Source: Klebsormidium nitens
Taxonomy: Eukaryota > Plantae > Klebsormidiophyceae
Direction: 5' to 3'
Assembly: GCA_000708835.1 (NCBI GenBank)
Contig: DF237146.1
Coordinates: 1 to 64,000, forward strand
DNA: 64,000 bases
Positions within the stretch are counted from its first letter, which is position 1; every line of letters begins with the position of its first letter. Both the position numbers and the translations under genes were made by a program. The notes under the pieces are model-generated. The model did no database searches. It was not told the origin of the DNA and worked only from the letters and a program-made list of their open reading frames with translations. Positions 2,021 through 49,872 of the stretch are shown here, piece after piece.

Positions 2021-2886
2021 TCAATGAACATTCGACAGTGGTTTGGATTGGATTTGGGGATAGTGGACTTGAAAACCACGTTTGCAACACATTGAACAGA
2101 GGAAAAACCACTTCCAAGGCTTGCCATTCCATGACGTCACTGGTCCAGGACGGCTGATGACGTCATCCAGAAAAGCGTAAGTCGCGACGGAGAGCTTCTA
2201 TTTGACGACGGGTCCGCCTCCAGAGGTCGCGTTATCAGCTATACTGACCCATGTCTTGACTGTATCACTGTAAGAAATGATAGCATCCGTTGTACTTGTC
2301 GGGCATGCGCAAGGCTCGCTCGCTGTGTGAATTGGATCCGGAATGCCCTCAGAATCTGCAGGCTTCCCCGTTGGCGAAAGGTATCCGGAACAAGCTAGAG
2401 GGGTGGTTTTCTTGGGGCTATTGGCACTCCAGCCAGTCAACGTGCCTCGAAAGCTACACAGGTGCAAGAATCGAGCCACGTCATTGACGCCATTAGCCAC
2501 GCTTTTGATGGAGCCTTCAGATCCAGAAATTTCGAATTCTTTACAGTTGCTAATTGGGTTTGTTCAGGACAGGGACGTGATGGCTTTTCCAGTCCCTCGC
2601 GCGCGCGCGCGTCCCTCGCGTTCATGAGCGCCAGCCATCTATACCCACCCAAGGCAGCCACCTCAGTGTCAAGCGCGGCGTTAGTGGTAGAATTGAGGTG
2701 CACGCTGAAGCTTTTTTCAAGGCACCCTGCTGATGCTAGGAAGGCTTCCTTCCAAAGACCAGTGTCTTTCTCGATTGCTTGGTGCAGCGAAGTAGAGACG
2801 CAGCTTGCCCTCAACAGAGAAAGTGGATCGTGCACAGCCAGCTTTTGTAGAATACACTGAACCAAGTCGTCCGGGAGACGCTCCAT
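2021..2886 (-). pseudogene. F-box gene, class II subfamily A, copy A1; disrupted
   Basis: MERLPDDLVQCILQKLAVHDPLSLLRASCV...LWKEAFLA is an F-box motif. Aligns with intact copy 7225-8178 apart from a 1-nt deletion at 2559-2561 and an in-frame TAG at 2198-2200. The C-terminal part (DVARFLHLCSFRG; SVATYAF; GKPWKW) is recoverable. Confidence 0.85.
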
Positions 2887-3415
2887 GGTCGCTATGAGAG
2901 CAAGCGGCCCTTGGCAATCCTGGTGATCTGGATTGGTATGATCAGCTCAGTGTGGCTCAGCTGCGAGGGAGCGCGCATCCGACCCGCGCGCGGCTCAGCT
3001 TGAGTGCGGCCGCGATATTAAAGAAGGTTTCAAAAGGTGGGCCGGGTCAGCTCACAGCCAACGTGAGCCGGCCGGCCGCGGCCAATACCGCCCAGCTAAG
3101 AATTGCAATTTAAGGCCAGTCACGCGGCCGCGCGAGAAACGTTCTGAGGCGCGCCCGGACGAACCTCAGGCAGCCACGTCGGGGCCGACCAGCGCGCGGC
3201 GCTCGTTAGGTACGCGGAGAGCCGCCGCCGCGCGTAGGCGACGCGGCCGGCCGGCCGGCAGGTTTCAGGGTGCGGCCGCCGCTCAAGCGACGCGCGGCAG
3301 TACTGATCGGATCGACGCGGCCCAGGTGACCAGGCCGGTCGCACTGCGGCTGTGCAAAATGGCAGCTCCGTTCACTTCGCTACAAGATCTAAGCTGCTAC
3401 TAAATCCCCGCCGCT
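2887..3415. promoter_or_regulatory. Shared divergent spacer / putative bidirectional promoter (A1-B1)
   Basis: GC- and CpG-rich. GCGGCCGC at 3006, 3124 and 3272. The block CAGCTCAGT..ACCCGCGCGCGGCTC..GCGGCCGCG..AAGGTTTCAA is also present at 6160-6243 and 8214-8310. Confidence 0.55.
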
Positions 3416-3753
3416 ATGGACCAGTTGCCTTCCAAGCGACGTCGTTTTGTTGATCCTCCGGAAGCTGGCAGTGCAAGAGCCGTTCTCCTGCTTCGCGTCA
3501 CGTGCGCTTTGACGCCCTTCCACCGCGCAGCAGCAGCCAATCCAGAGGTCTGTCCAGAACGAAGCACTTTACGGCTGAAAAAAGGGACACGTTGATTGCC
3601 GTCGTGGATTCCGCAGGAGGTTTCCAAACTGGACGCGCAAGTGGATGCGCGAGGACTCGTTTCGAGCGTCTGCTGACAGCAAAACTGTGCGCGACGCAAA
3701 GCAGCAGAGAGTCTGATCAAAAACAGAAGTGCAGCGAGTGCGGAACCCAGTAG
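3416..3753 (+). pseudogene. F-box gene, class I subfamily B, copy B1; frameshifted and truncated
   Basis: ATG 3416. Piecewise translation MDQL/PSDVVLLILRKLAVQEP/LLRVTCALTPFHRAAAANPEV.../KLDAQVDARG/RLLTAKL...QKCSEC matches 8671 and 47772 with several indels. Confidence 0.8.
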
Positions 3754-5206: not shown

Positions 5207-6108
5207 CTAAAATATCGACCCCAGCCAGAGCAGTAATTTCGTGACCCCAGACGTCTGGCTTGCCCGGTCAGGGGTTCGCGACACAAGATACACCTTTCCC
5301 TCGCATTGAGGAAGGACGCACTCGACGCCGTCACGCTTTGAATAGTAATCAAAAGACCACTGCCAAGGCTTGCCCTCGCATGACGTCACTGGTCCAGGAT
5401 GGCTGATGACGTCACCCAGGAAAGCGTACGTCTCGACGGTGAGCTTCTCTTCAACGAAGCGTTTGCCTTCTAAGGTCGTTCTACCAGCTCTCTTGATCCA
5501 ACACTCGACTAATTCATCGAAATAAACGCCTGTACATTCCGCATCGTTTGTAGGGCTTGATTCTGGGTCATAATCGCACGCAGAAACAAATACGCTCACG
5601 TCGTCTCCGGGTTTCCCGCTTGGTAGAATGTCATTTGAGCAAAGCAGGGGCAACGTTGCCTCTGGATTACAGGCCCTCCAGCCAATTAAGGTCCGCCGAA
5701 ACCTATACAGGTCCAAGAATCGAGCCACATCAGTGCTGGACCTCTCACCAGACGCTGTTGTACGAGTGCACTCGAGGGAGTTTGTTCAGAAGCCGGACGT
5801 GATGGCCTTTCGAGCCCCGCGCGCGTGCGCGCGCCCCTCGCTTTCATGAGCGCGAGCCGTCTATACCCGCCCAAGGAAGCCACTTCGGTGTCAAGCGCGG
5901 CGTTAGCGGTAGCACTCAAGAGCGCGTCGCAGCTTTGTTCAAGAGACCCTGGTGATGCTAGGAAAACTTTCTTCCAAAGACCAGTGTCTTTCTCGATTGC
6001 TTGATGCAACGAAGTAGAGACGCAGCTTGCTCTCAACAAGGAAACGGGGTCTTGCACAGCCAGCTTTTGGAGAATGCACTGAATCAAGTCGTGCGGGAGA
6101 CGCTCCAT
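5207..6108 (-). pseudogene. F-box gene, class II subfamily A, copy A2; single frameshift
   Basis: MERLPHDLIQCILQKLAVQDPVSLLRASCV. The only lesion seen is a 1-nt deletion at 5781-5783. The downstream frame (5207-5728, 173 aa) is open and ends KLLLWLGSIF, like the intact KLGLWLRSVF. Confidence 0.85.
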
Positions 6109-7224: not shown

Positions 7225-8178
7225 CTAGAAGACTGACCTCAGCCACAGACCTAGCTTGCTGTACTCATTCTCCTGCCTTGCCCGATCAGGGGCTCGGGAC
7301 ACAAAGAAGCTCTTTCCCTTGCATTTTGCCAGAACGTACTTGGCTCCGTCGACGTGCGCATTGATAAGAAAAGGCCACTGCCAAGGCCTGCCCTCCCGTG
7401 ACGTTACAGCTCCAGGAGCGTCCAAGACGTCACCCAGGAAAACGTAGGTCTCGACGCAGAGCTCTTCTTCGGCGACGTTTTTTCCGTCCAAGGTCGTGCA
7501 GCTACCCGCTAACTTTGCCCATGCTTTGATGACGTCATCAAAAAGAACGCCTGTACTCTTGATGTCGCCTGTAGGGCTTGATTCAAGTACAGGTTCATCC
7601 CTCAAATCCTTGATAGACATACCCACAGACCCTTCGAAGTACCAGCTTGGTAGAGGGAAGGTGGAAGGAGGCAGGCCGGGCGAGGTTTCAGTAGGACTGC
7701 CAGTACACCAGCCGAATACTGTCCCACGCAGTCTACACAGGTGCAGATATCGGTTCACGTCCGAGGCATTTGCGTACAGTTCGTCCATTGGCAGGTTTGC
7801 TTCGAACTTTCCCCTCCATATGGCAAAGGGGTTTTGTTCAAAAAATGGACGTAGCAGCTTTTCTAGCCGCGAAGTAGGGCGCACGTGCCTCGCTTTTATG
7901 AGCGCCAGCCGTCTATACCACCCGCCCAAAGAAGCGACGACGATGTCAAGCTTGCCGCTAACTGCGGTAGCTTCTGAATGCACGAGGCTAAGTTCTTGAG
8001 AAGCCTCCAAACCCACTGGGGTCAGAAAAGACTTCTTCCAGATAGCACTATCTTTGTCTTTTTCAACCGCCTGGTGGAAATTTCTGCAAACGCAGCTCGC
8101 CTTCAACAGGGAGAGGGGGTCCTGCACAGCAAGCTTCCGGAAAATATGCTGAACCAAGTCGTCCGGGAGACGCTCCAT
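7225..8178 (-). CDS. F-box protein, class II subfamily A, intact, 317 aa, intronless
   Basis: Uninterrupted ORF with N-terminal F-box LPDDLVQHIFRKL...ASCVCRNFH...IWK. C-terminal region not recognised. Confidence 0.9.
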   Translation of the reverse strand: MERLPDDLVQHIFRKLAVQDPLSLLKASCVCRNFHQAVEKDKDSAIWKKSFLTPVGLEASQELSLVHSEATAVSGKLDIVVASLGGWYRRLALIKARHVRPTSRLEKLLRPFFEQNPFAIWRGKFEANLPMDELYANASDVNRYLHLCRLRGTVFGWCTGSPTETSPGLPPSTFPLPSWYFEGSVGMSIKDLRDEPVLESSPTGDIKSTGVLFDDVIKAWAKLAGSCTTLDGKNVAEEELCVETYVFLGDVLDAPGAVTSREGRPWQWPFLINAHVDGAKYVLAKCKGKSFFVSRAPDRARQENEYSKLGLWLRSVF

Positions 8179-8670: not shown

Positions 8671-9505
8671 ATGGACCGCCTTCCAAGCGACGTTGTTCTG
8701 CTGATCGTCCGCAAGCTGGCAGTGCAAGAGCAAGTTTCTTTGCTCCGCGCCACGTGTGCCTTGGCGCCCTTCCACCGGGCGGCAGCAGCCAGTCCAGAGG
8801 TTTGGAAGGAAGCATTTTACGGGTGGGAAGAGGTCAAGGCACGCACTACCCGGCGTATTTTCCGGAGGAGGTTTCCAAACTGGATGCGGAAGTGGATGCG
8901 CGAGGGGGTGTCAGGCGTCTGCTGACAGCAAAACTGCGCGCGACGCATAACATCAGAGAATCTGAACAAAACAGAAGTGCAGTGAGTGCGGAGCCCATCC
9001 GATCGATGGTTGCTTTCAGCCGCAGCTCTTAAACGGCGGACTGCTTATTGTCGCCCGGATTTGCAACCATCCTCTTTCGTGGGGCCTCTTCGCTCAGGAA
9101 CGTTTCCCAACAGTACTTCCGCATCTGGACACCGGCTATTACACGGCGGGCCTTCTTCTCCAACGGATGTGTTCACTAACTTGGAAGGAAGATTTCATCA
9201 CAGGTGGTCGAAGGAGCCGCGATTCATTGGGAGAAAGCTTCAAAATGATAACCGTCGAAGCGTACGGATTCGGTTGTTCCCTTAAAAACGAGCGGAGTGT
9301 ATCGAAGATGGACGAAGTCTGGTTTGGAAACTTTCATCAAATCAATATCTGGCAGCGTAGTCTATGGGATGGTGCCTACACTATCTGGGGCGCCATTATG
9401 GGTCCAAATCGTGACCCTTGTGCCGAAATATGTTCACGAGGAAACTATCCACTGTTCCAGATCGATGCGCGGATTTTTCCGGAGTGGATGCGGTTCAACA
9501 ACTGA
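8671..9505 (+). pseudogene. F-box gene, class I subfamily B, copy B3; two frameshifts
   Basis: MDRLPSDVVLLIVRKLAVQE...PEVWKEAFYG, then frame 8754 (SKLDAEVDARGGVRRLLTAKL...SEQN), then frame 9167 (FQPQLLNGGLLIVARI...ITVEAYGF). Collinear with 47772-48527. Confidence 0.85.
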
Positions 9506-11019
9506 TCAGGAACCCGTAGAGGCGTAGATGAACCCACTGGCAATTTCCTACATGATATCTTTGAAGGAATAGGAAGATGAGTACGTCTGGAGCGCCCAAA
9601 AGTGCGACTCGTGAGCTGCCAAGACACGGTGTCAGAACTTCATCTGGAAGTAAAGTATGCCCAGCACCTTTAACTCCAAAGGATTGGATGAAAACCTTTA
9701 TGAGATCAAGTCTGCAAAGCGATAGCCTCAAGTCCTTGATCAGCGGAAGAAGAGCAGCAAGAGCCAATACTATGCAGCGGATATCGTGTATGAAACTTCC
9801 GAGTCAACGATAATTGTACTCCGTGTTGAAGACTGGAAGGATGCAAGTGCGGGTCCACTGAATGAATTTAGATCGGACAGATTCCCTCTAATTGTCTTGC
9901 AATCAGGATACATATAAGTACCGGTAGCCCCGCTTCGAAGGCTTTACCAACACTATATTTGCTTGCCAGTCCGTCTACTTTTCGAATATCCGACTTACCT
10001 CCACTATTGACTTGTTTCTTCTGCATGTGGTTAACGATATAGTGCAAGATGGTTGTTACTGCATGTACTCTAGACGAGCTTTGATCGCGGCTTGGTACGT
10101 ACTACATTCACATCTCATGCAACCAGACTTTTTTCAAGAACAAACCATGCACCAACTGGGTCAGAAGGTTGCGGCCCTGTACGATAGTCACGACTACATT
10201 GTTTAGAAGCGCGTCCTTCGCTGCCAAAGAATGCAGGAGGTGTCGAAAAGATTCTTACTTGGGTGCCTTTCGCCTTTTGCCTTTCGCGGCGTTCTCTTCC
10301 TTCAGTGGGCGGGCAGAGCGCATTTTAAGAGGTTTGCGATTCAAGGCGGCCGCTCGCGGCCGCCTCTTCTTCGGTTCAAAAATAAAAGCCGTTGCTAGCG
10401 CTGCCGCGCCCAGAGAGTTGGCTAAGTTTAGAAGATTCGCTGGCAGAGACAGATTGGAAAAGTTTCTGATGCTCGTCTGGGCGTCCTATGTTCCAGAATG
10501 AAGGAGACTGGAACAAGGTTGGGCCACAGGCTGGGCAGAAGTTGATATTGACACGGTAGGAAAGTTCGAAAGCAAGCGATTACTTGTTTAAGATTCGGAA
10601 TTTGACCAATCAATCTTCGTGAGCACCTTATATATTCAATCTGTGATGCGAACCGGCTGCGGGCCCATTGAGTACGTTGATTTGCCAGTACGCTTCAGAT
10701 TTTCAGGTACACTCGTGCACTTCAGTCCTGAGGGGAATATTCATCGGACAGCTTAGATTCCATCGTGAAAAGCGACTTCGGCGACCAAGCTAGCGCCGTG
10801 GGGCGTTGTCTGGTCGCCGGAGGGCCCAACGCTGAAAGTTTCGACAGACGCGTTCGGCTGCGCGGCCCGCAGCGCGCGCTACCCTGGCGGGCGCTGCGTC
10901 GAGAGGGTTTCACAGCAATTGTTAAGCTCCTCACGTCAGTCAAAGCGGCCGCGAACCCAATTCGGGCGCTACCCGGCAGATTCTCCATAACAACAGGGAC
11001 CGGAGAGAGGGAGGACGAC

Positions 11020-11976
11020 ATGGAGGCCCTTCCGGGCGACGTTTTCGTGGTGCTTCTTCACAAGCTTGCTGTTCAGGACCCTCTTTCTCTCGTGCGCGCC
11101 ACGTGTGCCTGGGCGCCCTTTTATCGCGCTTCAAAAGAAAACCCTAGTGTCTGGAGGGAAGCATTTTATGGAGGGGCAGGAGAAGAGGAGCGAGAAGACT
11201 CTTCAAAGTTAGATGACCAAGTGGAGATTTTAGGAGGGTACATGCTCTTGGTAAAAAGGAGGCTGCTTGTTTGTTCAAACGGCGCATATGATAGAGCTAG
11301 AGAAGACTTGAAGGCATGCGCAGAAGGCAACTCCTTGGATGCTCCCGGACGCAGCTTTGAGTCGAACATGTTTCCTGGAAGTATTCTCATCCTGGTTAGA
11401 TTGGAAGGGATGCTGCTCTTGTGGGGTCACTCTGACATTCAACAAAGACTAGCGCCGCGCGCAAAAGATTCGAGGACGTTCAGGGGGTTTTGGATGAACC
11501 TTCCTCTCGAGCAGCTTTATCCAGCTGATAGCTCATTGGAAAGGATGTTGAGAAGAGCTCGGGACGGAGTCAATGAAGAGCTATCCTGCTACCTCACAGG
11601 GCGGGCTAAGGAGGCCCTGTCTATTGACCTGTACGCTTCCACTGCGAAGGAAAATTGGTTAGAAGAACGGGGCGCAGCTACTCATTCGGTAGGGAACAGC
11701 GCTTTCCTCGGAGTCTTCCATTCGCTCGACGTCATGCGTGGTAAAGACGACGGCTTGTCATTGTGGGGTCACATCAAAGCAGAGACTTCATGGACTCCAA
11801 ATGGGAAAAAAGAGGGGAGAGTATTGGGGTTTCGATTTGTATCTGTTCCAGGCTGGTCCTTCTCTTGGTGCTTGAACGAGGAGCGGCAAGCAGACTTAGA
11901 GAAACTGAGTCCACGAGAACGAGCGCGCCTCGCGAAGTCTACAATCAGTGTGAAACTAGGAGTACGTCGTGATTGA
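11020..11976 (+). CDS. F-box protein, class I subfamily C, intact, 318 aa, intronless
   Basis: ATG 11020 chosen by paralog alignment (MEALPGDVFVVLLHKLAVQDPLSL). The ORF extension to 10765 is spacer DNA. Clearly similar along its whole length to 41355-42356. Confidence 0.9.
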   Translation: MEALPGDVFVVLLHKLAVQDPLSLVRATCAWAPFYRASKENPSVWREAFYGGAGEEEREDSSKLDDQVEILGGYMLLVKRRLLVCSNGAYDRAREDLKACAEGNSLDAPGRSFESNMFPGSILILVRLEGMLLLWGHSDIQQRLAPRAKDSRTFRGFWMNLPLEQLYPADSSLERMLRRARDGVNEELSCYLTGRAKEALSIDLYASTAKENWLEERGAATHSVGNSAFLGVFHSLDVMRGKDDGLSLWGHIKAETSWTPNGKKEGRVLGFRFVSVPGWSFSWCLNEERQADLEKLSPRERARLAKSTISVKLGVRRD

Positions 11977-13289
11977 CGTTTACCACGTCATCGGATCTGT
12001 CCGTGCCTGCACAGATGAAGATGTCTTTCTTGAAGAATCGCGGCGAGGTCGTGAGGTAATCCGGGAGATGCCTTTGTGACTGCACTACTCAAACTTTCTT
12101 AAGCAACACTGTATCAGGTGGCCCCCCTTCTCCCAAAGCCAGACCGCATGCGTTCAAGAACTCTTGCAGCCTCAGTTGAATATCGATGACGGGCCCACGT
12201 CCGACTTCTCGTTCCGATTGTATCAACGGCTTACTACATGGCTGGCTAGCACACTCTGAGATGAGCTTCTCTTATTCAGGTGCCCAACGAGCAATCCCAT
12301 CATGGCGATTTGATCACCGTGGCGTCATATACTAACAGCTGTAAACTTCAACGCGTGATTAAATGTACCCGACCTGCCGCACATCTCATGCGCCCATGTA
12401 TTCTTCTAAGGTGATCGCACTGGGACGGGTATGGTTGTTTTGGTGGCCTTTCAGGGCAGGTAAACTTAACTAGAGCTTATTGGTCACGTATGTGTGGGCG
12501 TGTCGATTGTTTTGGATTTCATTGCGCCCGTCGCATGCCAGTGCCTGCCAGACCTCGGCTTTATTACCAAATCGTTATGCTGGCATGCATCTGCATAATG
12601 GACCGCTGTCACGCAGGATTTGCAGCTAGAGGGCGCCCGAGTTCATCAAAATCAAGCACAGCATGTGCGGCTCAATGTGCTTCAATGCATGGACAACCGT
12701 GCGCGGCGCGCCGCCTGATGTGCCCGTCAATGATGGCTTTGACGTAATCATGTGGGCTGTGCATGACGAAGATCCGACGCCCCTGTTTAAGCCATCGGGG
12801 CCTGTGACTGATAAAATGGTTCAAGTTCTCGATCGGCGGGCAGAATCCCATTAAGCTCTACTCACAGGTGTAGCACATTCGAGTCACAATATGACGTGCC
12901 CATTCCACGCGTTCCAACTTTGGAATGTCTTCAGCGTGGAAACAATCAAAAGGGCTCAGAACGTTCATTCTTATAAACCCTTGAATACTCAAGAAAACTA
13001 TTTAGTAACGGAAGAGAAGCTGACCATATATTATCACACTAGCTCTTTGTAATTGACCGGCTACTGCTTTGATGGTCCGTTTCCAATCAGACAACTATCG
13101 ACCCCAGCCAGAGTAGCAAATTTTTGAACAATTTGAATCAATCCGTACACTTTGTTTGAATGACAGAAAACACATAAGAAGTAATCCCTGAAAAGATATG
13201 ACTTCAAAGGTCTTCCAGGAGACGGTTTCTTGATCATGCTGCACAAGTTAGCAATTGTGAAAGACCAGTACCATTTTTGTGCGCCAAGT

Positions 13290-14800
13290 TCACCTACAGG
13301 CTCCTGGACCTCACGTACTATCCGTTCCGTCGCCTTAGCAGCATACTTCTTTTTCCTGGCCCTCGAACGCTGACTCTCGGCGTCGCTCTCTACCACCTCC
13401 GCCTGCGCCACGAAGCTCCTCCTTCGCTCAAAACTACCGTTCCGCTCTCGTTGCACTTTCCTGGTTAAGTTTGCGCGGGGCCCAATACGCCCCAAAGCCG
13501 CTGCCGCAGAGCACACGAAACGCCTCCACTCGCCAACTAAACGTTCTAAACCCTCTGAATTCCTCTTCACAAGCCACGCGCTTCACTTCGTAGCGCTCTA
13601 GTTCCGATGCTGTCCGCAAGACCTGAGACGACAACGGGCCCTCTGGCGGAGTTTTCGGAGCCAAGGCGCTGACGCCAGTGCGGAAACGCTACAGAGGATT
13701 CGGTACGAAGGTGATGCTGGAGTGCAGGGTGAACGGGTAGCGGTTAGCGGCGCCCTCCCGTCTGGGGGGTCGGGGGAAAAGCTGGTTCGACCAGCTTTTT
13801 GATTTTTGGGATGAGCGACATCCCGAAGACCGAAAGAACTCCTGGAACGGTATGCGGGCAACATTCGGAGCCCGGCAAGGCCCCGAAGAAACCAAATTCT
13901 TCTTCAAGCAACGGTCATTAACAGCGGTTCGTAAGTGAACGTTCAAATACGGAACGCTCTGGTTCTTAACCTGTCTGCGCCTCCCTGGCCAGCTGCCTCC
14001 AGTCCCGCTTTTTCCGATCCTGGTACCCTTTCAAAGGCGACCGACGATTTTGTCGCTGCTTTCTTTGCCGCCTTCCCTGGGAATAAAGCTGCCGCCGTCG
14101 CTCACTTCCACTGCTGTTTTGCAGCGCCGTCACTCAAAAAGTACTCCCGACCGCCTTGATCTCCCCCAGGGGGGTCTTTTTCCAGCGGACTTCTAAGCCA
14201 ACCCGTCGATTCCACACCCCCCGTCGTCTAGGTCAAACGTAGTAACGGCCACTCTTGGCGGTCCCCCGGCTAGTCGTTCTCACCCGTCCCTGACCTCTTG
14301 AGAGTGTCTTTCCGTACTCTTTACACGGTCCGCTTCTTTCTGGCGACCCTTTCCCGCCTGCAAACACGCTGATGTGCGCCGCAAAATCCTTCGACAGCAC
14401 TCGTTCTTAACGTGCCTACCTTGTGCCAAGCCGCCGCCGCCTTCGTGCCAGGCTTCCCGCTTGACAGCACCGCTCGCGTCTCGATCGATCTGCCTGCTAA
14501 GGCACCACCGTTGCTGCAAGATCCGCTCTTCCGCCGAGGAAGTTGCGGAACAGAGACTTCGCGGCCCCGGCTGCTCGGGATTCTGCGCTCGCCCCCCTCC
14601 TCCAAGAGCAGCTTTCGCGGCCCCCCATTTGCGGCCAGACAATCCGCATCCCAATCTGAGCTCGGCACTTCGCCCCCCCCGTCATCACTTTGCGACGCCT
14701 ATTGCAACTCATCTAACGTACGAGCCGCACATTCGGTGCTCAACTCGTGACTCCAGTCCCCCTCACCGAAATTTCCTCGTCGTTCTTAATCCAGCCCTCG
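13290..14800 (-). pseudogene. Inverted, decayed duplicate of the last exon of the C2CD3-like gene
   Basis: Fragments DRDASGAVKREAWHEG, GAANRYPFTLHSSITFVP, PKTPPEGP.SSQV and VAQAEVVESD..SQR.R.RKKKYAAKATERIVR match about 34945-36510. Many stops and frameshifts. Homology continues into the 3' flank (about 13110-13290 vs 36510-36680). Confidence 0.9.
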
Positions 14801-15341
14801 GCCCGAAAACTTGCGCGCCGCGCGTTGCCGCCGGAGAGGTCCTCAGACTTAAATGGGATGACGCGACGGTCGAAAGCACGTTAGCCGATCCAACCTTCCA
14901 TTTCTCCTTGCTTTTGTGCCTTTATTGGTAAGTTTTGAGGTACGGTCCTTATATGGAAACTAAAGTCACGTAACTCAGTACGTACGTGAATTCTATATGT
15001 TTTATCTGCTCAGCATGTAATCCGACCATGCATGTCAGCGGTCACTGCAGCTGGTCCGAGTGATTGAATTTGATCGGAAATTCAATCTCTTTTAGTGCAG
15101 CTGTGCCGGCGTGTCAGGCCCTGGCTGACCTAACGAACTTATCAGTGTGAATGAAACTCCCAGAGTCACGTTTCTAGTATTATAGTCTGGCAGCGGCACT
15201 GAACGTACTAGACCGACGTCATTTTTCAAGAAAGCTCAAAACATTCTGCAGATTGTGCATACGTCCTGTTCATTTGATCACGATCGCTTCAACTTCATCC
15301 TTTACAAAGTGGTTCATCCGACATCTAGGTAGATCCGCTAA

Positions 15342-37708: not shown

Positions 37709-38877
37709 CTACTCCAGCATACCCATCTTTATTGCAAACTTTGCTCCGCACACTCTTCCTCGTTCACTCCACGATATTAGATCTTCCTCTTCCAAACTCC
37801 AAGAAAAGGACCAGCCTGGAACAGACTGATAGTTGAGCCCCAAAGCGGCAGATACCCCCTCCTCTTTTCCTTGGACCCGAGTCTTCTTTGGAGGCTCCGG
37901 TGTGACATGCATGCCCCCACACATAAAAGTCGTCGAATGTCTTCCGAGGAATGATGTCCAGGGCATGAAAGAACCCGTGAAAAGCGCTGTTCCCGACTAG
38001 AGTAGCTGCGCCTCTCCTCTTAGACCTTCGTTTCTTTGGAGTGTAAGCGTACAATTCAATAGACAGTGCCGCCTTAGGCGCCCGCCTTGTGAGACAGCTG
38101 GTGCGATTCTCATCAGCTCTGTCCCGAGCTCTTCTTAAGATCTTCTCCAAGGAGCGGTCAGCAGGTCAGCTGGAAACAGCTGTTCAAGAGTGAGGCGTAT
38201 CCATCCATCAAAATTCCTCCAATGCTTGGCGCATGCCAACCTTTGTCGCTTGTCAGAGAGACCCCACAAGAGCAGTCTCTCTTTCAACCGAATCAGGATC
38301 AGAACCCTTCCAGGAAACATGTTTGACGTCAAGCTGCGGCCGGCAACACCTGATAGATGGCGTTTCTCCATCACGTCTTCTTTGGTTTTGGCAGGTTCAC
38401 CGTTTGAACAAACACGCAGCCTGGCAGTTACCAAGACCTTGTACCCTCCCAGAATTTCCACTTCTGCTTGTAACCTAGAAGTGTCTTCTAGTCCCTGTTT
38501 TCCAGCCATTCCGTAGAATGCTTCCTTCCAGATACTAGGGGTTACTTTTTCAGCGCGGTAAAAAGCCGCCAAGGCACACGTGGCACGCACCAGGGAGAGC
38601 GGGTCCTGAACAGCGAGCTTATGGAGTAGCACCAGAACCACGTCGCCCGGANNNNNNNNNNNNNNNNNNNNNNNNNNNNNNNNNNNNNNNNNNNNNNNNN
38701 NNNNNNNNNNNNNNNNNNNNNNNNNNNNNNNNNNNNNNNNNNNNNNNNNNNNNNNNNNNNNNNNNNNNNNNNNNNNNNNNNNNNNNNNNNNNNNNNNNNN
38801 NNNNNNNNNNNNNNNNNNNNNNNNNNNNNNNNNNNNNNNNNNNNNNNNNNNNNNNNCATGCCCGGAAGGGCCTCCAT
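37709..38877 (-). pseudogene. F-box gene, class I subfamily C, copy C2; two frameshifts and an N-gap in codons 5-7
   Basis: MEALPG [gap] PGDVVLVLLHKLAVQDPLSL. Three consecutive frames (38135-38641, 37764-38150, 37709-37966) together align with 41355-42356 and end KFAIKMGMLE. Confidence 0.88.
38652..38856. other. Assembly gap (205 N)
   Basis: Run of N. Confidence 1.
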
Positions 38878-39126
38878 GTCAGATTTCATCGTTCTCGACA
38901 GACTTCTGCCGTCACGGTTGTCCGCGTCGCCGCGCCAGTGCGGCCAGCGCCGAGACCGCCTTCGCGGCCGCGTTAACCGAAATGCTGGGCTCTTAAGTTT
39001 TGAAACCCAAACCCTGTCGTCCTGGTCGACCACGCGGCCGCGGTAGCTAGCGCGCGCCATGCTCCAATTCGTCTGCTATCTAAATCTTTCAAGTGAAGCA
39101 AGGCGTGCGTTGGAGCGCCTGACGCC
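38878..39126. promoter_or_regulatory. Shared divergent spacer / putative bidirectional promoter (C2-D1)
   Basis: CGCGGCCGCGTTAAC at 38963, GAAACCCAAACCCT at 39002, GCGGCCGC at 39034. TTCAAGTGAA..AAGGCGTGCG is shared with the 42357-42685 spacer. Confidence 0.6.
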
Positions 39127-40158
39127 ATGGAGGCTCTTCCAAGCGACGTCGCTCAGACAATTCTCCACAAGCTAGCAGCGCAGGACCCCCCCTCCTTGCT
39201 AACACTGACCTGCGCAAGCGCATCTTTCTACAGGGAGGCCGAGCAAAGTCCTGAGATCTGGAAAGAAGCGTGGTTGGCACCATTGCATCAGCCTCACTCT
39301 GAGCACAGCAAACTGGCGCTTGGAAAAGAGCTGAGCGCAAAGCTGGACTCAGAGATTCTTGCGTTGGGGGGATATAAGAAGCTGGTGATAGCCCGCTGGG
39401 CGAGGGTTGCCCAAGGACACAAGATTTCCTCCGATGAAGAGTTTGATGACGCTTACTGTGACATCGCCAACCCTCCCCGTTGGAGCAAGTCAACCGGAGA
39501 GAAGGAGTACACCAGCTCTAGAACTCGATACTTGGTTCTTATCAGGGTGGAGGGAAGCCTTCTTCTCTGGGGGCTCTACAAAGCAGAAGCTTTGGGCCCT
39601 CCCCGCGGGACCTGTCATTGTAAGCCAGGTGCTGAAGAAAGAGATACCCTGTCTCTCAGCTTCTATGACCGACGATTACCAAGCCTCCCAGATCCTTCTA
39701 TCGCAAGGTTGACGATCCGAGCAAGCAGATTCGAGCCAGTTTACGTGGATGTCCCTGTTGACAAGATCCAAGAGCACTGGAGAGAATCTTATGGACTTGT
39801 GAGTAGATTCGGAGGAACAAACTTGGAATTCCAAGAGCTGGTGGCCAGCATGGAAATTTATGCATGCCTGGATGAGCGCACCGATCCAAAGAAACTGCCG
39901 CCAACAAGAAAGGGCAAGACCTGGGAGTGCTTCCTTTTCCTCCGGCACCCTTCGGATCCTTCTCAAGGGTATCACTACCTTGATTGTGGATTCGGCGGAA
40001 GATTCTATGTCTTCGTCAAAGATGATCAAGAGGGGGACATCCAGGATTCGCAGTCTTCGCTGTTACTGCACATGGCGCAGGCAGCTGTGAGCTTCGTTTC
40101 AGAAGTCAATGAGAAGCTTTGTCAGGCGGGAACCTGGATTGCGGACCTGTTTGATTGA
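39127..40158 (+). CDS. F-box protein, class II subfamily D, intact, 343 aa, intronless
   Basis: MEALPSDVAQTILHKLAAQDPPSLL...EIWKEAWLA. Open ORF with family motifs KLDSEILALGGYKKL and RYLVLIRVEGSLLLWG. Confidence 0.9.
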   Translation: MEALPSDVAQTILHKLAAQDPPSLLTLTCASASFYREAEQSPEIWKEAWLAPLHQPHSEHSKLALGKELSAKLDSEILALGGYKKLVIARWARVAQGHKISSDEEFDDAYCDIANPPRWSKSTGEKEYTSSRTRYLVLIRVEGSLLLWGLYKAEALGPPRGTCHCKPGAEERDTLSLSFYDRRLPSLPDPSIARLTIRASRFEPVYVDVPVDKIQEHWRESYGLVSRFGGTNLEFQELVASMEIYACLDERTDPKKLPPTRKGKTWECFLFLRHPSDPSQGYHYLDCGFGGRFYVFVKDDQEGDIQDSQSSLLLHMAQAAVSFVSEVNEKLCQAGTWIADLFD

Positions 40159-41354
40159 ATCGTACTAAGGACGTTTGTATTGGGTCAGGTAGCTTCTAGA
40201 AGACGAAGACGAAATAGTTTTCAGAACACGAGCTACTGGCAGAAACAAATCGCTGAAGAAAATTGAGAGGAGGAAGGATATGAACAATAGATGTCTAAGT
40301 TGCTTTCGTGCGAAGGCAACCGCTTTGTGAAGCTGAATGACTGGCACGGTAACGATGGCTCACTGCGGTCTTATCGTTCATCATGAGAAGATTTTATACG
40401 AGATCCTCAGGCTACCTACTGGCGAGCGAATGGACGAGGGATTGACCAGGACAACACCGGTTGTGATGTGCGCGCCTATCTCTGATTAATATCTGCTGCA
40501 TGAGTCGCTTTTCTGTAGCATGTATATGTGACACACGGGAATGGTCTCGCTCACTCTTGTGAGGCTGTAGCCTGTCTGAATATCACGAGGAGCGAATGGG
40601 TATCTGACATCCGTGAGGCAATGATCAGTGCCTTTCACATGCTTAGACTTGGTACGAGAGCTCCGTGATTCGCGCCGTTCTGAGGTGCTGAAGTTTGAAG
40701 TATCTACATCTGCGCGCCACCACATCAACGAAACGTACTGAGCGTCGGTAGTCCTTTTGCAGTGCATATACTCTTCAGTTATTGGAAGCTGTGGAAAAGG
40801 ATGGACTTGGGTACATAAAAGGCGACTTCATTTGGTGGGCACGTTCCAGACTGTGCTATGCTGCCTGAATTGCATAATTGTCTTATGCTACCCTGATTTG
40901 TCTTCTAGCAAAACTTTCGATACATATTTAGCAGGCGCATGATGAAGCGAAGGATTCGGCAGGGGCGCAGGTTATGTACGGGACATTCATTAAAAGTGCT
41001 TGGCGACCTTCGATACATCCGCTAGAGGGACCATTGCCAATTTGTATCTACATATGTGGGGCCAGCAAAAGTCTGGAGAGCAGTATACTGGAATCCCAAT
41101 GATTATAAAGCATCTGAACCAGATCTGGCATGCTTAAAAAGCAAACTTTCAGGCGCGTAAGGAGCTACCCAAACTTTGAAGGCCTTGTGGACAGAGAAGC
41201 GGGTCGTTGTGTACTCGTAACATCAACTACATATATAGTTCGGGGCCGCAAGAATCATCAGAAGGATGCCTTGCCGGTTCGTCTCTTCGTAACGTTTACT
41301 GAGGGAAGACGTTGACTTGACCAACCAGACTTGATCAATAGCTGGTACCGCGAA

Positions 41355-42356
41355 CTACTCTAGCATTTGCTGCTTGATCTCGAACTTTGCAAGGCGCGCT
41401 CGTCCTCGTGGGCTCAGTTTCCGCAAATCTTCGTCCCTCTCCTCTCTCAGGCTCCACGAAAAGGACCAACCTGGGACAGAACGATAGTTGAACCCCAAAA
41501 TGGAGTAAACCCCGTCCTGATCTTCTGTGACCTGAGGCTTTGGAGGCTCCGCGTTGACATGCCCATATATTGCGTCGTCTTTCTTACCACGCATGACGTC
41601 CAATGGACGGAAGAATCCCTGAAAAGCATGGTTGCCTTCGGAAGTAGGCGCCCCTCCAATCACCACTTTCTCAAGGTCGTTTTTCTTCGGCGTGTAAGCG
41701 TACAGTTCAACGGAAAGGTCCGCCTTGAACCCTTCTGTTACATAGCAACTTTTGTTCAAAGGATAAACTCCTTCCCGAGCTTCCCTCAATGTCTTTTCCA
41801 GAGAGATATTAGCAGGATAAAGCTTTTCGAGTTGAAGGCGTAACCAACCCCTATAACTCCGCCACCGGTCTTTAGCAGACGCCAGTCTTTGTTGCTTGTC
41901 AGAGAGACCCCACAAGAGCAGCCTCCCTTTCAGCCGCACCAGGACTACAAACCTTCCGGGGAACATGTTCGACTCAAAGCTGCAACCTGGAGCATCCAAA
42001 GGGTTGCTTCGTCCCTTCACGGTTCTTTTGGGTTTGTTCTGGTCACGCCCTAAACCTACACAAACACGCAGCCTTGTTAGCAACAAGGTCTTGTAACCTC
42101 CCAAAATTTCTACTTCTGCATCCAACTTGGAGCAAGCCTCCGGTTCATGTTTGAAATCCGTCCCATAAAATGCTACTTTCCAGATGCTAGGGGTTTCTTC
42201 TCCGGCGCGGTAAAAGGACGCCGATGCACACGTGGCGCGCACCAGGGAAAGCGGGTCCTGACCAGCGAGCTTGTGAAGAAGCACCACAACAACGTCACCT
42301 GGAAGAGCCTCCATGTCGGCCTTTGAGTCTAACGTCGTGTTCTGGTCTGAGTCCAA
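41355..42356 (-). CDS. F-box protein, class I subfamily C, intact, 333 aa (319 aa from ATG 42314), intronless
   Basis: MEALPGDVVVVLLHKLAGQDPLSL. Open ORF and paralog of 11020-11976. Confidence 0.9.
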   Translation of the reverse strand: MDSDQNTTLDSKADMEALPGDVVVVLLHKLAGQDPLSLVRATCASASFYRAGEETPSIWKVAFYGTDFKHEPEACSKLDAEVEILGGYKTLLLTRLRVCVGLGRDQNKPKRTVKGRSNPLDAPGCSFESNMFPGRFVVLVRLKGRLLLWGLSDKQQRLASAKDRWRSYRGWLRLQLEKLYPANISLEKTLREAREGVYPLNKSCYVTEGFKADLSVELYAYTPKKNDLEKVVIGGAPTSEGNHAFQGFFRPLDVMRGKKDDAIYGHVNAEPPKPQVTEDQDGVYSILGFNYRSVPGWSFSWSLREERDEDLRKLSPRGRARLAKFEIKQQMLE

Positions 42357-42685
42357 ATGATTCCTGCCTTGTAGTTGCTTCTAGTCTATAATCCGTTTCG
42401 CGTCGACGCAACGATCGGCCGCCAGCCAGCGTCAATCGCGCCGACCACCCCTCCGCGGCCGCGTTGACGCGAGGAACTTGATGAAAACCTCTTTGAAAAC
42501 ATCTCGTGCGCACGCGCGCGCGGTCGACCGGCCTCTAAATCTTGAAACCCTCGATTCACGACCGATCACGCGGCCGAGATTGCGCGCGCTGCGGCCATGA
42601 CATGCGCATATCAAAGGGCTACCTGTAAGCAGAGGAAACTTCAACTTCAAGTGAAAGAAAGGCGTGCGCTGGACCGCCTAGAGCC
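42357..42685. promoter_or_regulatory. Shared divergent spacer / putative bidirectional promoter (C3-D2)
   Basis: CGCGGCCGCGTTGAC at 42454 and GAAACCCT at 42544. Same layout as 38878-39126 and, inverted, 10760-11019. Confidence 0.6.
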
Positions 42686-43198
42686 ATGAAGGATCTTCCG
42701 GGCAACGTGGCGCGGATCATTCTCCGCAAGCTGGCAGTCCAGGACCCCCCCTCCTTGTTATCACTGACTTCTGCAGATGCATCTTCTTACAGAGAGGCCA
42801 AGCAGAGTCCTGGGATCTGGAAGGAGGCGTGGTATTCATCAGCTGATCAGCAAAGCTCCGAGGTCTGGAAGAAAGGGTGGTCCCCACCCGAGGATAATGA
42901 GTTTGAATTCAGGGACGTCATGAACCCGTCACTTTGGTGGAAAGAGATGAGCGCGAAGCTGGACTCTGAGATCCTGGCGCTAGGAGGCTTAGGGTACAAG
43001 AAGTTGGTGATCGCTCGCTGGGCGAGAACTCCCAAAAAGAAAGTCTCTACTCCCGGTGGAGACCAGGGAAACACTCTTGAACACCTCAAGATTCCTGTTG
43101 GCAGACTTGCAAACAAACAGTTGGAATACAGCAGCTCCACAAGCAGATACCTGATGCCCCTCAAGGTAAAGGGGGGGTTCTTCCTTTGGGGGGCCTAG
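42686..43198 (+). pseudogene. F-box gene, class II subfamily D, copy D2; truncated at 170 aa
   Basis: MKDLPGNVARIILRKLAVQDPPSLL...KLDSEILALGGLGYKKLVIARW...RYLMPLKVKGGFFLWG, then a stop. Paralog 39127 continues for about 190 aa more. Confidence 0.8.
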
Positions 43199-44583
43199 AA
43201 CTGCCTAGAATCACAAAAACACCGAGATACGAGTTGGGTTAATCTAGGGGCCTGAGAAAAGGTACAAGAAACGGAACAGCTTCTGAACAGCCACCAGCAT
43301 CATCAGCAATCGCCTTTCATGTACTAGGTTGTTAAAACAAGCAAGCCGTTCGGAGCCAGCTTACTACCTGGATCGCCGTTTCGACAAGAGAGACAACACT
43401 GGAGCAAGGTTGGAAAAGTCGAAGAGGATCCGGACGGGAAGGAACACGAGGATTCCAAAGGCCATGGCCAGTATCGTATTCTAAGCAACACAGAGTGAGA
43501 GAACGAATCCGACAAAGCTTTCGCTGAGTAGGAAAGGCAAGGCCGGGATTGCGCACTGCTGCGCCGTCCCCATTCTGAAGCGTATTCTACTATTGTCGCC
43601 GTCGACTGGATTCAAGTCTTACTGGAAGTTTGTATGCCATGGTGACAAAGATTTTTGAGAGTGTTCTCAGTCATCAAAGAAAACCTCTGTGGGCGAGAGC
43701 CTCGGTTGCGGACCTGTTAGGCTGAATGCTCCGGCAGATGTATACATCATCTTGCCAGGCTTGTACATGAAAAAGTGGATTTCATTGTAAAATATTGGCT
43801 GAAGGGAACCGCTTTAAAGAGTCAATCGGAGGAAGGATCAAAGGCTAAAAGGTTGCTTACAAGTCTGCAAGCTTTTCGTCAAGAGAAAGTGGGACGAGGT
43901 TGAAATAGTCTTTTCCGGATCTCTCCTCTATCCACTCTGCTTCGAACAGATTGCAGACGGGCTTCTTATTCTGTCTACCTACTTGTGACAGCTGGCGAAC
44001 CCAATAAACGAGGCTCTTGGTGAAAGCAGAAACCGTTCATATGCGCGCATTGATCTCACTTCCTATATACGCGGACTTGCCCCATAAGCTGTACCTTGCA
44101 TGGGCGTAGCGATGCAGGACTGAATAAATTCTCATAGTGTCGAGGATATTTTCACTCTGAAATTGATGTGAGGCGATCAAGTAATTTGCATCGGCCAGCT
44201 GCCAAAGCTGCTTTGCTGACTCTCTTGAGGAGTCTCATGTTCCTCGGCTCCCCTGAGGAGCTGAACGGTTGAAATCAGATCCTTTCCATATACCATCAGG
44301 TCGAAATATATAATAGTTAGCCGCGAGACGAGGATATAGCGACGGTATTGAGCTTCATTTCCTCTGCGGTGCTTTATCTACAACTTACCCCGTTCCGTTG
44401 CCAGATTTCAACAAGTCAAAAACACGGCGGAAGTATCCCGCATGCCTAGTAATCCTTGCAGGGACCCAGAAATTTTTCGACGTTGCCAGCTTTTCACATA
44501 TGAGATTCTGTGTTTTGAAAGAAGCCTCGTTGCTTCTGGTTCCGATTGCCACACGCCGGCCAGTCCAAAACAAATGCTCGTCT

Positions 44584-45060: not shown

Positions 45061-45926
45061 TTAATTGGTAAACCAACGGACTGTGCAAGCCGGCAGATTC
45101 TCGGAATCAAATTCAATATTTGTGTAGCCTCCTAACAAACATCCTTCACTGCACTGATTATCAACGTTTTGATCAAAGGCGCCCAACGCATAGCAGTTCC
45201 ACGTTTTAAGGCACGAGCGGACCCCCCTTGCTGATGGAAGGTTCGATACCAAACTTTCGTCTGGGGCTGATACTCTCCGCTCTTCTTTCGCTTTTCCTAA
45301 GGATTCAGTCCAACCGTATGCATCCACGGAAAGCGCTTCAAAGCTTTCTTCCAAATTACAACAGCCTTTGCGAACTTTCGAGATGAAAGCTTCCTTCCAG
45401 TCGAAGCAACACTGTGGCTCAAGGGGAATGCCTGCACAAAGGTAAGTGGCGTGCTATTTTCCGGCGAAGAATATTTCTGTCCGGAAACGGTCCTGAGGGT
45501 AGTAGAGGCAGCACAACCGCAGGCTGCCGCATATGCGAGCGATTACCAGCAATCCGCCACTACACAGCTCCGGTTGAAAGAAGCCGTGAAGGGGGCGCAC
45601 TCGCTCCACCTTGTCTGATTTTGCTCAGACGCTCTGCGCTTCTGCTCCGCACAGAATCGTGCCGTCAGTAAACGCTTGAAACCGCCTCGCGCGTCCACCT
45701 CCGCATCCAACTTGGAAAGCTCCTCTGAGAGGTACGCTTGGAACAGTAGCTGCATGCCTCCTCCTATTTCTGACCCTTAAAACACCTCCTTCCAGACCTG
45801 TGGGCCGGCTGAAGCTGCGCGATGGAAGCGTGCCAAGGAACACGTGGCGCGCATCAAGGAGAGCGGGTCTTGCCAAGCCAGCTTGCGGAGGATCACCCGA
45901 ACGACGTCACTCGGAACGTCATCCAT
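45061..45926 (-). pseudogene. F-box gene, class I subfamily B, copy B4; stops and frameshift
   Basis: MDDVPSDVVRVILRKLAWQDPLSLMRATC...VWKEVF* (TAA 45777-45779 where paralogs have Y), then SKLDAEVDARGG, a frameshift near 45580, FQPELCSGGLLVIARI and FEALSVDAYG. Confidence 0.85.
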
Positions 45927-46230
45927 AGCAGCGGGCCCTAGAAGGTTTGAGGAAAGAGTTTCGTTTCAGAGCACGGCTGGAGAACCGACGCGCGCCGCTA
46001 CCATCGCGCATCGCGGGCCCGCTGAAGATTCCGGCCGGCCGCGACGGCCGAGTTGCCGACTCGCGGCCGCGCTTCGTCGCGGAGACCAGCCTGAGCCGCG
46101 CGCGTCTGCGCGGCAGAGTACCGCCCGCGAGCGTGCGCGCGTGCGTTGTTGATCGACCCCACCCTGACGGGCGGCGGCCGCCCTGTTGCAAAAAGGCGCG
46201 GCCCGCCCAAGAAGAAGGCAGCGCCCAACG

Positions 46231-46452
46231 ATGGCCGCTCTTGCAACGGACATGATCTTGGTTATATTAGGCAAGCTTGAGGAGCAGGATCCCCCTTCTT
46301 TGCTGCAGGCTACTTGTGTCATTCACGCAATTAGCTTCCGCCATGCTCGCCGAACTACAGCTGTTTGCTCAGCCCTGAGACGCGCCCTCTTGGGCGACCT
46401 CGCGCGTTGGAGCGTTGGACCACGGAGTGACGGCAGGTCGGGCGCCTTATAA
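46231..46452 (+). pseudogene. F-box relic, class II (E-type), facing B4
   Basis: MAALATDMILVILGKLEEQDPPSLLQATCV resembles 49019 (MDGLAVDVIVIILRKLAGQDPLSLLQA). Decays after about 40 codons. Confidence 0.7.
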
Positions 46453-47771: not shown

Positions 47772-48527
47772 TTACATCTGCTTTTCTGGCGCCCCAAAGA
47801 GACCAAGCGACATCTGACTTGTCAGTTCCGGCAAAGGAGAATACCACTCCGACGAATCCCATACCAGACTCTGTCCATCGGTGGTGCACTCGGCTCTTAG
47901 TTTCGCTTCTCTTGAGGAGCCGCTGAATCCGTACACTTCGACGGACAAGGGTTCAAAACTTCTGCCCGAGATAGCACGTCTTCTTAGAGCTTCTTCAACA
48001 TAAGGGTCCTTCAAACCAGCAAAAGGACGCAGTGACTTAAGGAACATGAGTGGAGATCGGTGAAATGGGTAGTAATTGGAACTCAGAATCTCTGGAAACG
48101 GTCCCCGGAAACGGTCCCGAGGGTAGAGGCCCCACAAGAAGAGGTTGCTGCAAATGCGGGCGACGATCAGCACCTCGCCCTCAAAGAGATCCGGTTGGAA
48201 GCGGCCAGACTCGCCGCACTTCTGGTTTTGTTCAGACGCCTTCTGCGTCCCGAGTAACCTCGCCATCAGCAGACGCCTGAACCCCCCTCGCGCATCCACC
48301 TCCGCATCCAACTTGGAAATTTCCTTTGGGAAGTAGGACAGAGATCGGGACTGCATGCTATCTCCTAAATGCGAGCCATAGAAAGCTTCCTTCCAGACCT
48401 GTGGGTCGGCTAATGCAGCGCGATAGAAGGGCGCCAAGGCCCACGTGGCGCGCAGCAAGGAGAGCGGGTCCTGCACAGCCAGCTTGCGGAGGATCGCCCA
48501 AACGACATCGCTCGGAAGGTCATTCAT
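47772..48527 (-). CDS. F-box protein, class I subfamily B, open ORF of 251 aa, intronless (C-terminus possibly shortened)
   Basis: ATG 48527 by paralog alignment (MNDLPSDVVWAILRKLAVQDPLSLLRATW). The upstream ORF extension to 48884 is GC-rich spacer. Confidence 0.85.
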   Translation of the reverse strand: MNDLPSDVVWAILRKLAVQDPLSLLRATWALAPFYRAALADPQVWKEAFYGSHLGDSMQSRSLSYFPKEISKLDAEVDARGGFRRLLMARLLGTQKASEQNQKCGESGRFQPDLFEGEVLIVARICSNLFLWGLYPRDRFRGPFPEILSSNYYPFHRSPLMFLKSLRPFAGLKDPYVEEALRRRAISGRSFEPLSVEVYGFSGSSREAKLRAECTTDGQSLVWDSSEWYSPLPELTSQMSLGLFGAPEKQM

Positions 48528-49018
48528 AGCGGCGGGCTTTAGAAGTTCTCGGAAAGAGTGTTTGAACAACTTCACATACGGCTGGAATAGACACGCGCCG
48601 CTTGAACTCGCGGGCGCCCCGGGGGGTTCCGATCGCCGGCCGCGCCGACCCCGTCGCCGCCCCGCGGCCGCGCTGCGGCGCGGAGACGGGAGTCGCGCGC
48701 GGTCGCGCTCCGGCGAGATGACCAGAACCACGGGCGGCCGCGCTCTGGCGCGGAGACTAGAGTCGCGCGGCCGCGTCCCGGCGAGAGGACCGAGCCGCGC
48801 GCCGCGCCGCGCGCGTCTGCGCCATAAGGTACGCTTTCTTTTCCGCGTCAAGTGCAAGCGAGGTGAATGACGTAATGCATTCAATCCCTCGCGCGGGCGC
48901 GGGCGCGCCGGTGACAGAATCCTGTTGCGGCTGCCCTAGAGAACGCCGCAAAAACTAGTTTAAACTTGGGGCACCAGCAGAAGTCTGAGCTCTTCAGCAA
49001 ACACCTGTGCGCGCAGAG

Positions 49019-49872
49019 ATGGACGGTCTTGCAGTGGACGTAATCGTGATCATTCTGCGCAAGCTAGCGGGACAGGATCCTCTTTCCCTGCTGCAAGCCA
49101 TGACGTGCGCTTGCAAGTCGTTCCTGAGATGGTCTCCTGCTCTTTGGAGGGAAGCGTTTCTAGCCCCTTATCCCGCGCGCGGACGAAAATGCGTTGGGGT
49201 TGGAAGAAAGCTTAACGCCTGATTTCGGTGAGATGGTCACGTCAATGGGGGAATATAAGCGGCTTGCGCTGGTGAAAGGTCGGTATCGGCGGGCGTCGAA
49301 GCTGCACATTGCAAACCTGAACAAACACCCAGAGAAACTTCCAACGACTGAGCTAGAGAAAGGGTATTCAGGCGCATCGTTACCTCCATATTCAAAGATC
49401 TTGGCCCGGTACTTGTTTCTTTACAAGTTGCGCGGGGAAACTCTTTCGGGGACATTCTTTGCGACACCGCAGAATCCGTACTACATTGAAACTCCTAGCT
49501 GGATCCTTAAACTGTTTCCTAACCACAGAGAAGCGGACGCTGATAGCATGCCTGTGACAGCCTATTTGACGATAGCTGGAAACCAGCGTCTTGGTATAAC
49601 CTACGAAAGGATGCTGAAGGATTGGACTAGAGACGGAACGATCAAGGTCACGAAGAAAGCCAAAAAAGGGGGATGTAAAATAAATAGAGGCGTGGTCTCA
49701 GATATATAGAGTCTCTAATCTTGAGGTCTACGCCTGTTTTAACCCTGATCTAAAATCAGCGAGAAGAGAGTGCAAGCCGTGGGACTTCCGCCTTGCTATC
49801 ACGACCAAACGGAACATTTTCACCTTTCCCGTTTGCAGGCGGAAAGTATACCTGCTTTCCCCCGGAACCTAA
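49019..49872 (+). pseudogene. F-box gene, class II (E-type, A-related); frameshifts
   Basis: MDGLAVDVIVIILRKLAGQDPLSLL...LWREAFLA, frameshift near 49180, EYKRLALVKGR...ARYLFLYKLRG, lesion near 49710, then NLEVYAC..KPWDF..FPVCRRKVYLLSP*. Confidence 0.85.

Follow-up and report, generated by a model that had tools for sequence, protein, structure and literature searches.

Head-to-head F-box-like gene pairs in Klebsormidium nitens: a fixed class pairing probably left behind by DNA copying

We analysed a stretch of 64,000 nucleotides from the streptophyte alga Klebsormidium nitens (assembly GCA_000708835.1, contig DF237146.1, positions 1 to 64,000 of the forward strand; hereafter the window), which carries a family of F-box-like genes arranged largely as divergent, head-to-head pairs. 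In each pair a gene of one class faces a gene of another, and an earlier reading made from the sequence alone had suggested that the two might be a co-functioning module. Our results point instead, with a probability of about three in four, to ordinary birth-and-death evolution of a lineage-specific F-box family, in which the fixed class pairing would be a trace of how the DNA was copied and not of a mutual need of the partners. Pairs were duplicated as blocks, their members were then lost independently of each other, and elsewhere the family occurs in other arrangements. A new paired ubiquitin-ligase system is not revealed by these data.

Layout of the family in the window

Copies were located by tblastn with intact members, by open reading frames (ORFs) and with a hidden Markov model (HMM) of the N-terminal 100 alignment columns. 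The resulting tally of 17 copies includes a supposed partner of A2 at about 6418, which is undetectable; the 16 others are listed here, together with the spacer of pair 1, the palindromes in the spacer of pair 4 and the assembly gap.

A1, 2093 to 2886, minus strand: class II (A) pseudogene of pair 1; frame change near residue 115-118, C-terminus truncated
Spacer of pair 1, 2887 to 3415, no strand: holds the palindrome CGCGGCCGCG at 3123
B1, 3416 to 3750, plus strand: class I (B) pseudogene of pair 1; several frame changes inside the first 60 codons
A2, 5207 to 6108, minus strand: class II (A) copy carrying a single frameshift near 5740-5776; partner not detectable
A3, 7225 to 8178, minus strand: intact class II (A) gene of pair 3, 317 aa, uninterrupted ORF
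B3, 8671 to 9343, plus strand: class I (B) pseudogene of pair 3; homology spread over three reading frames
C(11020), 11020 to 11976, plus strand: intact gene of class I (C) without a partner, 318 aa, lying in an inverted segmental duplication; no family remnant upstream
C4, 37712 to 38877, minus strand: class I (C) pseudogene of pair 4; insertion in codon 7 (assembly gap) and two frameshifts
Assembly gap, 38652 to 38856, no strand: conceals an insertion whose ends are inverted repeats and which a direct repeat flanks, as seen at contig ends from runs X1 and X3
Two CGCGGCCGCG palindromes, 38963 to 39042, no strand: in the spacer of pair 4
D1, 39127 to 40158, plus strand: intact class II (D) gene of pair 4, 343 aa; dN/dS 0.35 against its ortholog
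C5, 41355 to 42314, minus strand: intact class I (C) gene of pair 5, 319 aa
D2, 42686 to 43541, plus strand: class II (D) pseudogene of pair 5; stop after residue 170, remainder decayed in another frame
B4, 45247 to 45926, minus strand: class I (B) pseudogene of pair 6; in-frame stop at codon 50, frameshift near residue 105
E1, 46231 to 46365, plus strand: class II remnant of pair 6, F-box part only (HMM positions 1-44, E=1.5e-8); nothing recognisable downstream
B5, 47772 to 48527, minus strand: intact class I (B) gene of pair 7, 251 aa
E2, 49019 to 49709, plus strand: class II (A/E) pseudogene of pair 7; frameshift near 49200, stops replacing the C-terminal part
Unpaired remnant, 56691 to 56879, plus strand: decayed, HMM E=0.0015; translation starts MESLSNDVLLVVLAK
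Unpaired A/E-type pseudogene, 58519 to 59302, plus strand: frameshift near codon 30 and an in-frame stop

The N-terminal starts at 2886-, 3416+, 6108-, 8178-, 8671+, 38877-, 39127+, 42314-, 42686+, 45926-, 46231+, 48527- and 49019+ (sign for strand) include six divergent pairs, whose ATG-to-ATG spacers measure 529, 492, 249, 371, 304 and 491 bp. Each pair is made up of one class I gene (B or C) and one class II gene (A/E or D). The sequence-only reading had described the same six pairs with gaps of 250-530 bp and had set class I opposite class II in each; both points were confirmed, with measured gaps of 249-529 bp and with partners drawn from different clades, and the motifs that it gave for the two classes appear roughly as described in the ORF translations. 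The class pairing is non-random, yet it is accounted for by the copying of a few ancestral pairs, the pairs being non-independent events.

A decayed seventh pair, 6108/~6418, had also been proposed. This one could not be upheld: neither the HMM (E<50) nor sensitive blastn detected a B-type remnant at about 6418, and A2 is therefore effectively unpaired. Where seven window pairs are counted below, they are the six divergent pairs plus A2 with this supposed partner. Three further unpaired copies had been missed, namely the intact C at 11020+, which lies inside the range then described, the decayed copy at 56691+ and the broken one at 58519+. No partner remnants were found upstream of 11020 and 58519 at E<50.

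The proteins carry an N-terminal F-box

All classes align over their full length and share motifs after the F-box; the alignment of A with D, for instance, reaches E=3e-17 over 318 residues. A3 scores above the curated Pfam cut-offs for both F-box-like (PF12937, 35.1 bits against 24.3) and F-box (PF00646, 34.7 bits against 20.5). Matches to the F-box-like family were obtained for 38 of 69 members at E<=0.01 and for 54 at E<=10. Individual B, C and D members fall below the Pfam thresholds (E=0.013 for D1), yet they are homologous to A over the same residues. No Pfam domain other than F-box was found in the 69 members.

An AlphaFold2 model of D1 computed from the alignment of 69 sequences had a predicted local distance difference test (pLDDT) score of 69 overall and about 93 for residues 1-50, with helices at residues 6-50; an earlier model from 15 sequences was poor (pLDDT 57). 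When residues 1 to about 94 of the model were matched to 48,161 solved chains, the top five were all SKP1-bound F-box proteins: FBXO31, SLY1, Cdc4, FBXO3 and Fbs2. Their Z values of 5.4-7.2 are middling, and it is the consistency of the top rows that counts. The earlier description of the genes as F-box genes is thus borne out, as F-box-like, by the Pfam scores of A3 and by these structural matches. Searches of PDB sequences with the family profile and with A3 gave nothing significant.

The body of the protein is modelled at low confidence, with about eight strands and a long helix at the C-terminus. Foldseek found nothing for this fold in the PDB at E<=0.001, and the best match in the ESM atlas, to an F-box cluster, had a TM score of 0.32. 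Neither Pfam (69 members) nor Foldseek against the PDB yielded a substrate-binding domain that could be recognised behind the F-box.

When 1.84 billion representatives were searched with the family profile, 172 clusters were returned at E<=1e-3, among which the only named entries are hypothetical F-box proteins of K. nitens. Scans of viral and metagenome contigs with C5 confirmed no relatives. As far as these searches reach, the family is lineage-specific and has so far been found only in Klebsormidium-like algae. Ratios of nonsynonymous to synonymous substitution rates (dN/dS) for the intact genes were 0.35-0.46 overall; the F-box taken alone gave 0.13-0.29 and the remainder 0.33-0.55. By these estimates the intact genes are under moderate purifying selection.

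Pairs were duplicated as blocks

The earlier proposal that the pair is the unit of duplication held for both the C/D and the A/B type, as judged from collinearity, synteny and mirrored trees. C and D of pairs 4 and 5 are collinear duplicates, as are A and B of pairs 1 and 3, at 68-80% identity. In a related genome, a locus from the Logan assembly of SRR23617307 (L002) is 70-78% identical to the window and has the same order as positions 35.1-42.8 kb: the tail of a large gene, a C/D pair and a second C/D pair. One alignment crosses an entire spacer.

A maximum likelihood tree of 45 N-terminal regions placed B, C and one head-to-tail group in a class I clade with 95/95 support. D, together with the copy at 8976 of the K. 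nitens locus L006, and A/E formed separate supported clades outside class I. The branching of C is matched by that of D: C4 groups with L002_9476 as D1 does with L002_9186, and C5 with L002_6749 as D2 does with L002_6329. Congruence extends to the A/B quartet. Chance alone would make two quartets agree about once in nine times, so the result is consistent with duplication of pairs without being strong evidence for it. The pair of L006 appears incongruent in the tree; an approximately unbiased (AU) test does not reject its congruent placement (p=0.28).

Orthologs differ by a synonymous divergence (dS) of about 0.6, paralogous pairs by 0.85-1.05. The pair duplications are therefore older than the split of the two genomes.

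Window positions 11012-14686 and 38651-35074 are related by an inverted segmental duplication that is 3.7 kb or longer. It carries a C gene and a pseudo-copy of the large gene's 3′ end (33.9-36.5 kb; 69-76% identity). It copied a C gene, as a mirror of C4, without its D gene, and thus gave rise to the unpaired C at 11020. Both copies of the large-gene tail also occur in the related genome (L002 and L003).

Five of 17 copies are intact

The intact copies, defined by uninterrupted ORFs, are A3, C(11020), D1, C5 and B5; the other 12 of 17 are broken, in that their reading frame changes over the space of a few bases, is cut by stops or lacks an end. This count and the constraint on the survivors bear out the birth-and-death evolution that had been suggested. 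In all seven window pairs at least one partner is gone or carries two or more disabling lesions.

Part of the reads behind the assembly came from 454 sequencing (PMC4052687). Sequencing error as the source of the frameshifts was ruled out for positions 37700-43600, over which contigs of two DNA runs showed no indels relative to the window. The lesions of C4 and D2 are therefore real. This re-check covers 37700-43600; outside it most broken copies have at least two lesions, and A2 has only one. Introns were likewise ruled out as the cause of the breaks, since each intact member consists of one ORF and the changes of frame take place over a few bases, too few to accommodate an intron.

Contigs of the two DNA runs extend into the assembly gap in C4, by 42 nt beyond 38651 and by 25 nt ahead of 38857. 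Over 18 nt one overhang is the reverse complement of the other, and neither continues the reading frame of C4. The gap is flanked by the direct repeat GCCCGGA (plus strand), or by 10 nt counting the first loose letters. The smallest join of the overhangs is 55 nt long and shifts the C4 frame. The gap is therefore no plain break: codon 7 carries an insertion whose ends form inverted repeats and whose target site is duplicated. The insertion resembles a small transposon or its footprint. No further copies of its inverted-repeat sequence were found in the window or in loci L001-L008.

A further route by which such pairs die was seen in the related genome. At L003:4662-5865 a single deletion has removed the spacer and both N-termini of a C/D pair, so that D is left from residue 40 and C from residue 190.

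Partners decay independently and other arrangements occur

No window pair is intact on both sides (0 of 7). The intact C5 and D1 sit in different pairs, and the intact C at 11020 has no partner. Of the 14 head-to-head pairs that could be judged across all loci, both genes were intact in two, only the class I gene in two, only the class II gene in four and neither in six, and the intactness of one partner was independent of that of the other (Fisher p=1). The proposal of a co-functioning two-component module is thus not supported, either by the pairs of the window or by this wider set.

The sequence-only reading had also regarded the class pairing as fixed. This was found in the window pairs; elsewhere head-to-tail arrays, single copies and pairs of sister paralogs also occur. 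Head-to-tail arrays were present at L001, at L003 and, in K. nitens, at L004 (five copies) and L007 (two). Head-to-head pairs of two sister paralogs were found at L008 and, in the other genome, at L005, so new inverted duplications yield head-to-head pairs without a class rule. Single copies were found at loci L009-L011, and two metagenome contigs hold the family as single copies.

A heterodimer prediction for intact partners, C (P0001) with D (P0005), scored 0.00, which speaks neither for nor against binding. Contigs from runs guessed to be RNA were 240-320 nt long and of low depth, covered intact genes and pseudogenes alike, and contained no splice joints and no readable transcript starts or strands.

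Two annotated gene models of K. nitens run across several family copies and are probably chimeric. KFL_001020220 (580 aa, 7.3 kb; L004:10001-17295, DF237051.1) spans four tandem copies, and KFL_008270010 (644 aa, 7.8 kb; L006:2047-9800, DF237776.1) spans a head-to-head pair.

A palindromic 10-mer lies upstream of family genes

The palindromic 10-mer CGCGGCCGCG occurs at 14 sites in the window, where 0.09 would be expected, and is present in 6 of 7 spacers.

Sites associated with the family: 3123, 6210, 38963, 39033, 42454, 46062, 48663, 48766, 58241, 58353
Sites not associated with the family: 36291, 52869, 52905, 56932

When the window and loci L001-L008 were taken together, 36 of 44 sites lay within 600 bp upstream of a family ATG, and this was the case in both genomes. 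The 10-mer stands equally upstream of paired, head-to-tail and single copies, whatever their orientation. Its flanks are not conserved, so it is the 10-mer itself that is kept; being palindromic, it could serve both directions. From its placement, CGCGGCCGCG is a good candidate for a promoter element of the family, tied to the gene rather than to the pair.

Other features of the window

Between the two clusters, at 25488-36510, lies an unrelated large multi-exon gene, GC-rich (up to 64%), with long acidic low-complexity ORFs of 1053, 542 and 858 aa; Pfam gave it no signal other than a weak IQ motif. Positions 15338-16095 are taken up by a tandem repeat of three to four copies, about 78% identical, with a unit of about 200 bp.

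Discussion

Ordinary birth-and-death evolution would account for this family as follows. The N-terminal F-box presumably docks on the SKP1 subunit of an SKP1-cullin-F-box (SCF) ubiquitin ligase, and the fast-evolving body of about 200-290 residues presumably selects substrates. The first pair presumably arose when a local inverted duplication set two copies head to head over a short promoter region. These copies would then have diverged into class I and class II. Block copying of that pair followed, and from it the A/B-type and C/D-type pairs and their tandem repeats derive. Later losses would have struck at random; each subfamily (A, B, C and D) retains at least one intact gene, and the rest are pseudogenes.

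Several observations weigh against this explanation. Orthologous pairs have held their orientation and short spacer since the split at dS of about 0.6, which could reflect selection for a shared promoter. Pairs with both genes intact exist, L002 9186/9476 in the related genome and L006 8188/8976 in K. nitens, and in both species one or more intact C genes and one or more intact D genes remain at the C/D locus, as would also be expected if both were needed. Class II may not be a clade, depending on where the tree is rooted, and the sample outside the window is a small one of 10 loci picked by homology. Selection might keep the layout itself, with one bidirectional promoter that carries CGCGGCCGCG driving both genes, so that the two classes are made together and share a pathway, perhaps forming a heterodimeric SCF receptor or a pair of sensor and helper. 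The palindrome in 6 of 7 spacers, the retained layout of the orthologous pairs, the different clades of the window partners and the doubly intact pairs would all suit such an arrangement. We consider it unlikely, as CGCGGCCGCG is equally common upstream of unpaired and head-to-tail copies, partners in the window are never both intact and decay independently, and the intact C5, D1 and C(11020) are scattered over two pairs and a partnerless site. A two-gene unit in the full sense, co-expressed from a CGCGGCCGCG-based promoter, with products that act together, for example as a heterodimeric SCF receptor, and with complementary loss as the mark of selection for one of each, strikes us as distinctly improbable; the pattern in question is that C5 and D1 survive in the window and that the related genome has kept both genes of the pair orthologous to pair 4.

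Two other explanations concern the nature of the genes themselves. There is little chance that the N-terminal helices are an F-box look-alike with another use and that most loci are non-functional debris. This would agree with B, C and D members individually missing the Pfam thresholds (D1 at E=0.013), with the middling structural Z of 5.4-7.2 and the lack of a significant PDB sequence match, and with expression being unproven; it is opposed by A3 exceeding the curated cut-offs, by 54 of 69 members matching F-box-like at E<=10 (38 at E<=0.01), by five best structural matches that are all SKP1-bound F-box proteins, and by the F-box being the most constrained region. It is very improbable that the family is a selfish or conflict element, whether a toxin/antidote-like or drive-like unit or an antiviral or anti-transposon family whose turnover reflects an arms race. 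Against it stand the synteny conserved between genomes and a dN/dS below 1 in every comparison and region; viral contigs with close patterns yielded no relatives, neither partner has a toxin-like feature, and partners decay independently. The high turnover with many pseudogenes, the lineage-specific spread over many clusters and the relaxed constraint outside the F-box are what such an element has in its favour.

Birth-and-death evolution of an F-box family thus remains the reading we prefer. The analysis brings to light an F-box-like family that had not been described, is confined to Klebsormidium-like algae as far as found, and has an unnamed, putatively target-binding body. In practical terms the analysis yields a candidate promoter element in two genomes, flags two probably chimeric gene models and explains an assembly gap as a disruptive insertion.

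Comparison with known systems

The best structural match of residues 1-94 was FBXO31 in its complex with SKP1 (5vzt, Z 7.2), and when residues 120-343 were searched by language-model features, an FBXO31-type cluster came up with a score of 0.75, which is within the chance range. Unlike FBXO31, the family gave no match to PF12014 (Cyclin_D1_bind), the beta-barrel domain of that protein, in 69 members at E<=10, and the modelled C-terminal part did not superpose. Kinship with FBXO31 was accordingly not confirmed and is a lead only.

Fixed head-to-head pairing traced to duplication history has a precedent in the LYK subclade IA/IIA arrays of rosids, tandem arrays in which the fixed pairing of subclades was explained in this way (PMC2728734). 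Those genes encode LysM receptor kinases, and repeated re-duplication of the pair is not described there.

Paired nucleotide-binding leucine-rich repeat (NLR) immune receptors of plants, such as RPS4/RRS1 and RGA4/RGA5, are co-retained, their two proteins being mutually dependent. The pairs described here resemble them in setting two paralogs of different clades head to head over a short spacer. Unlike paired NLRs, the F-box-like genes decay independently of their partners, can stay intact on their own and lack an integrated decoy domain.

Close parallels are the lineage-specific F-box expansions of land plants and nematodes, which form tandem arrays and undergo birth-and-death evolution. The family differs from those in that its body matches no named domain (not LRR, Kelch, FBA, WD40 or DUF295), in that a divergent pair, and not a single gene, was partly what was copied, and in that its host is a streptophyte alga. 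In other respects it is like them: a conserved N-terminal F-box is joined to a variable target-binding body, here putative, the genes lie in local clusters with many pseudogenes, constraint is weaker beyond the F-box, and the genes are restricted to a single lineage. The family shows that such expansions, with their high turnover into pseudogenes, exist already in an early-diverging streptophyte alga.

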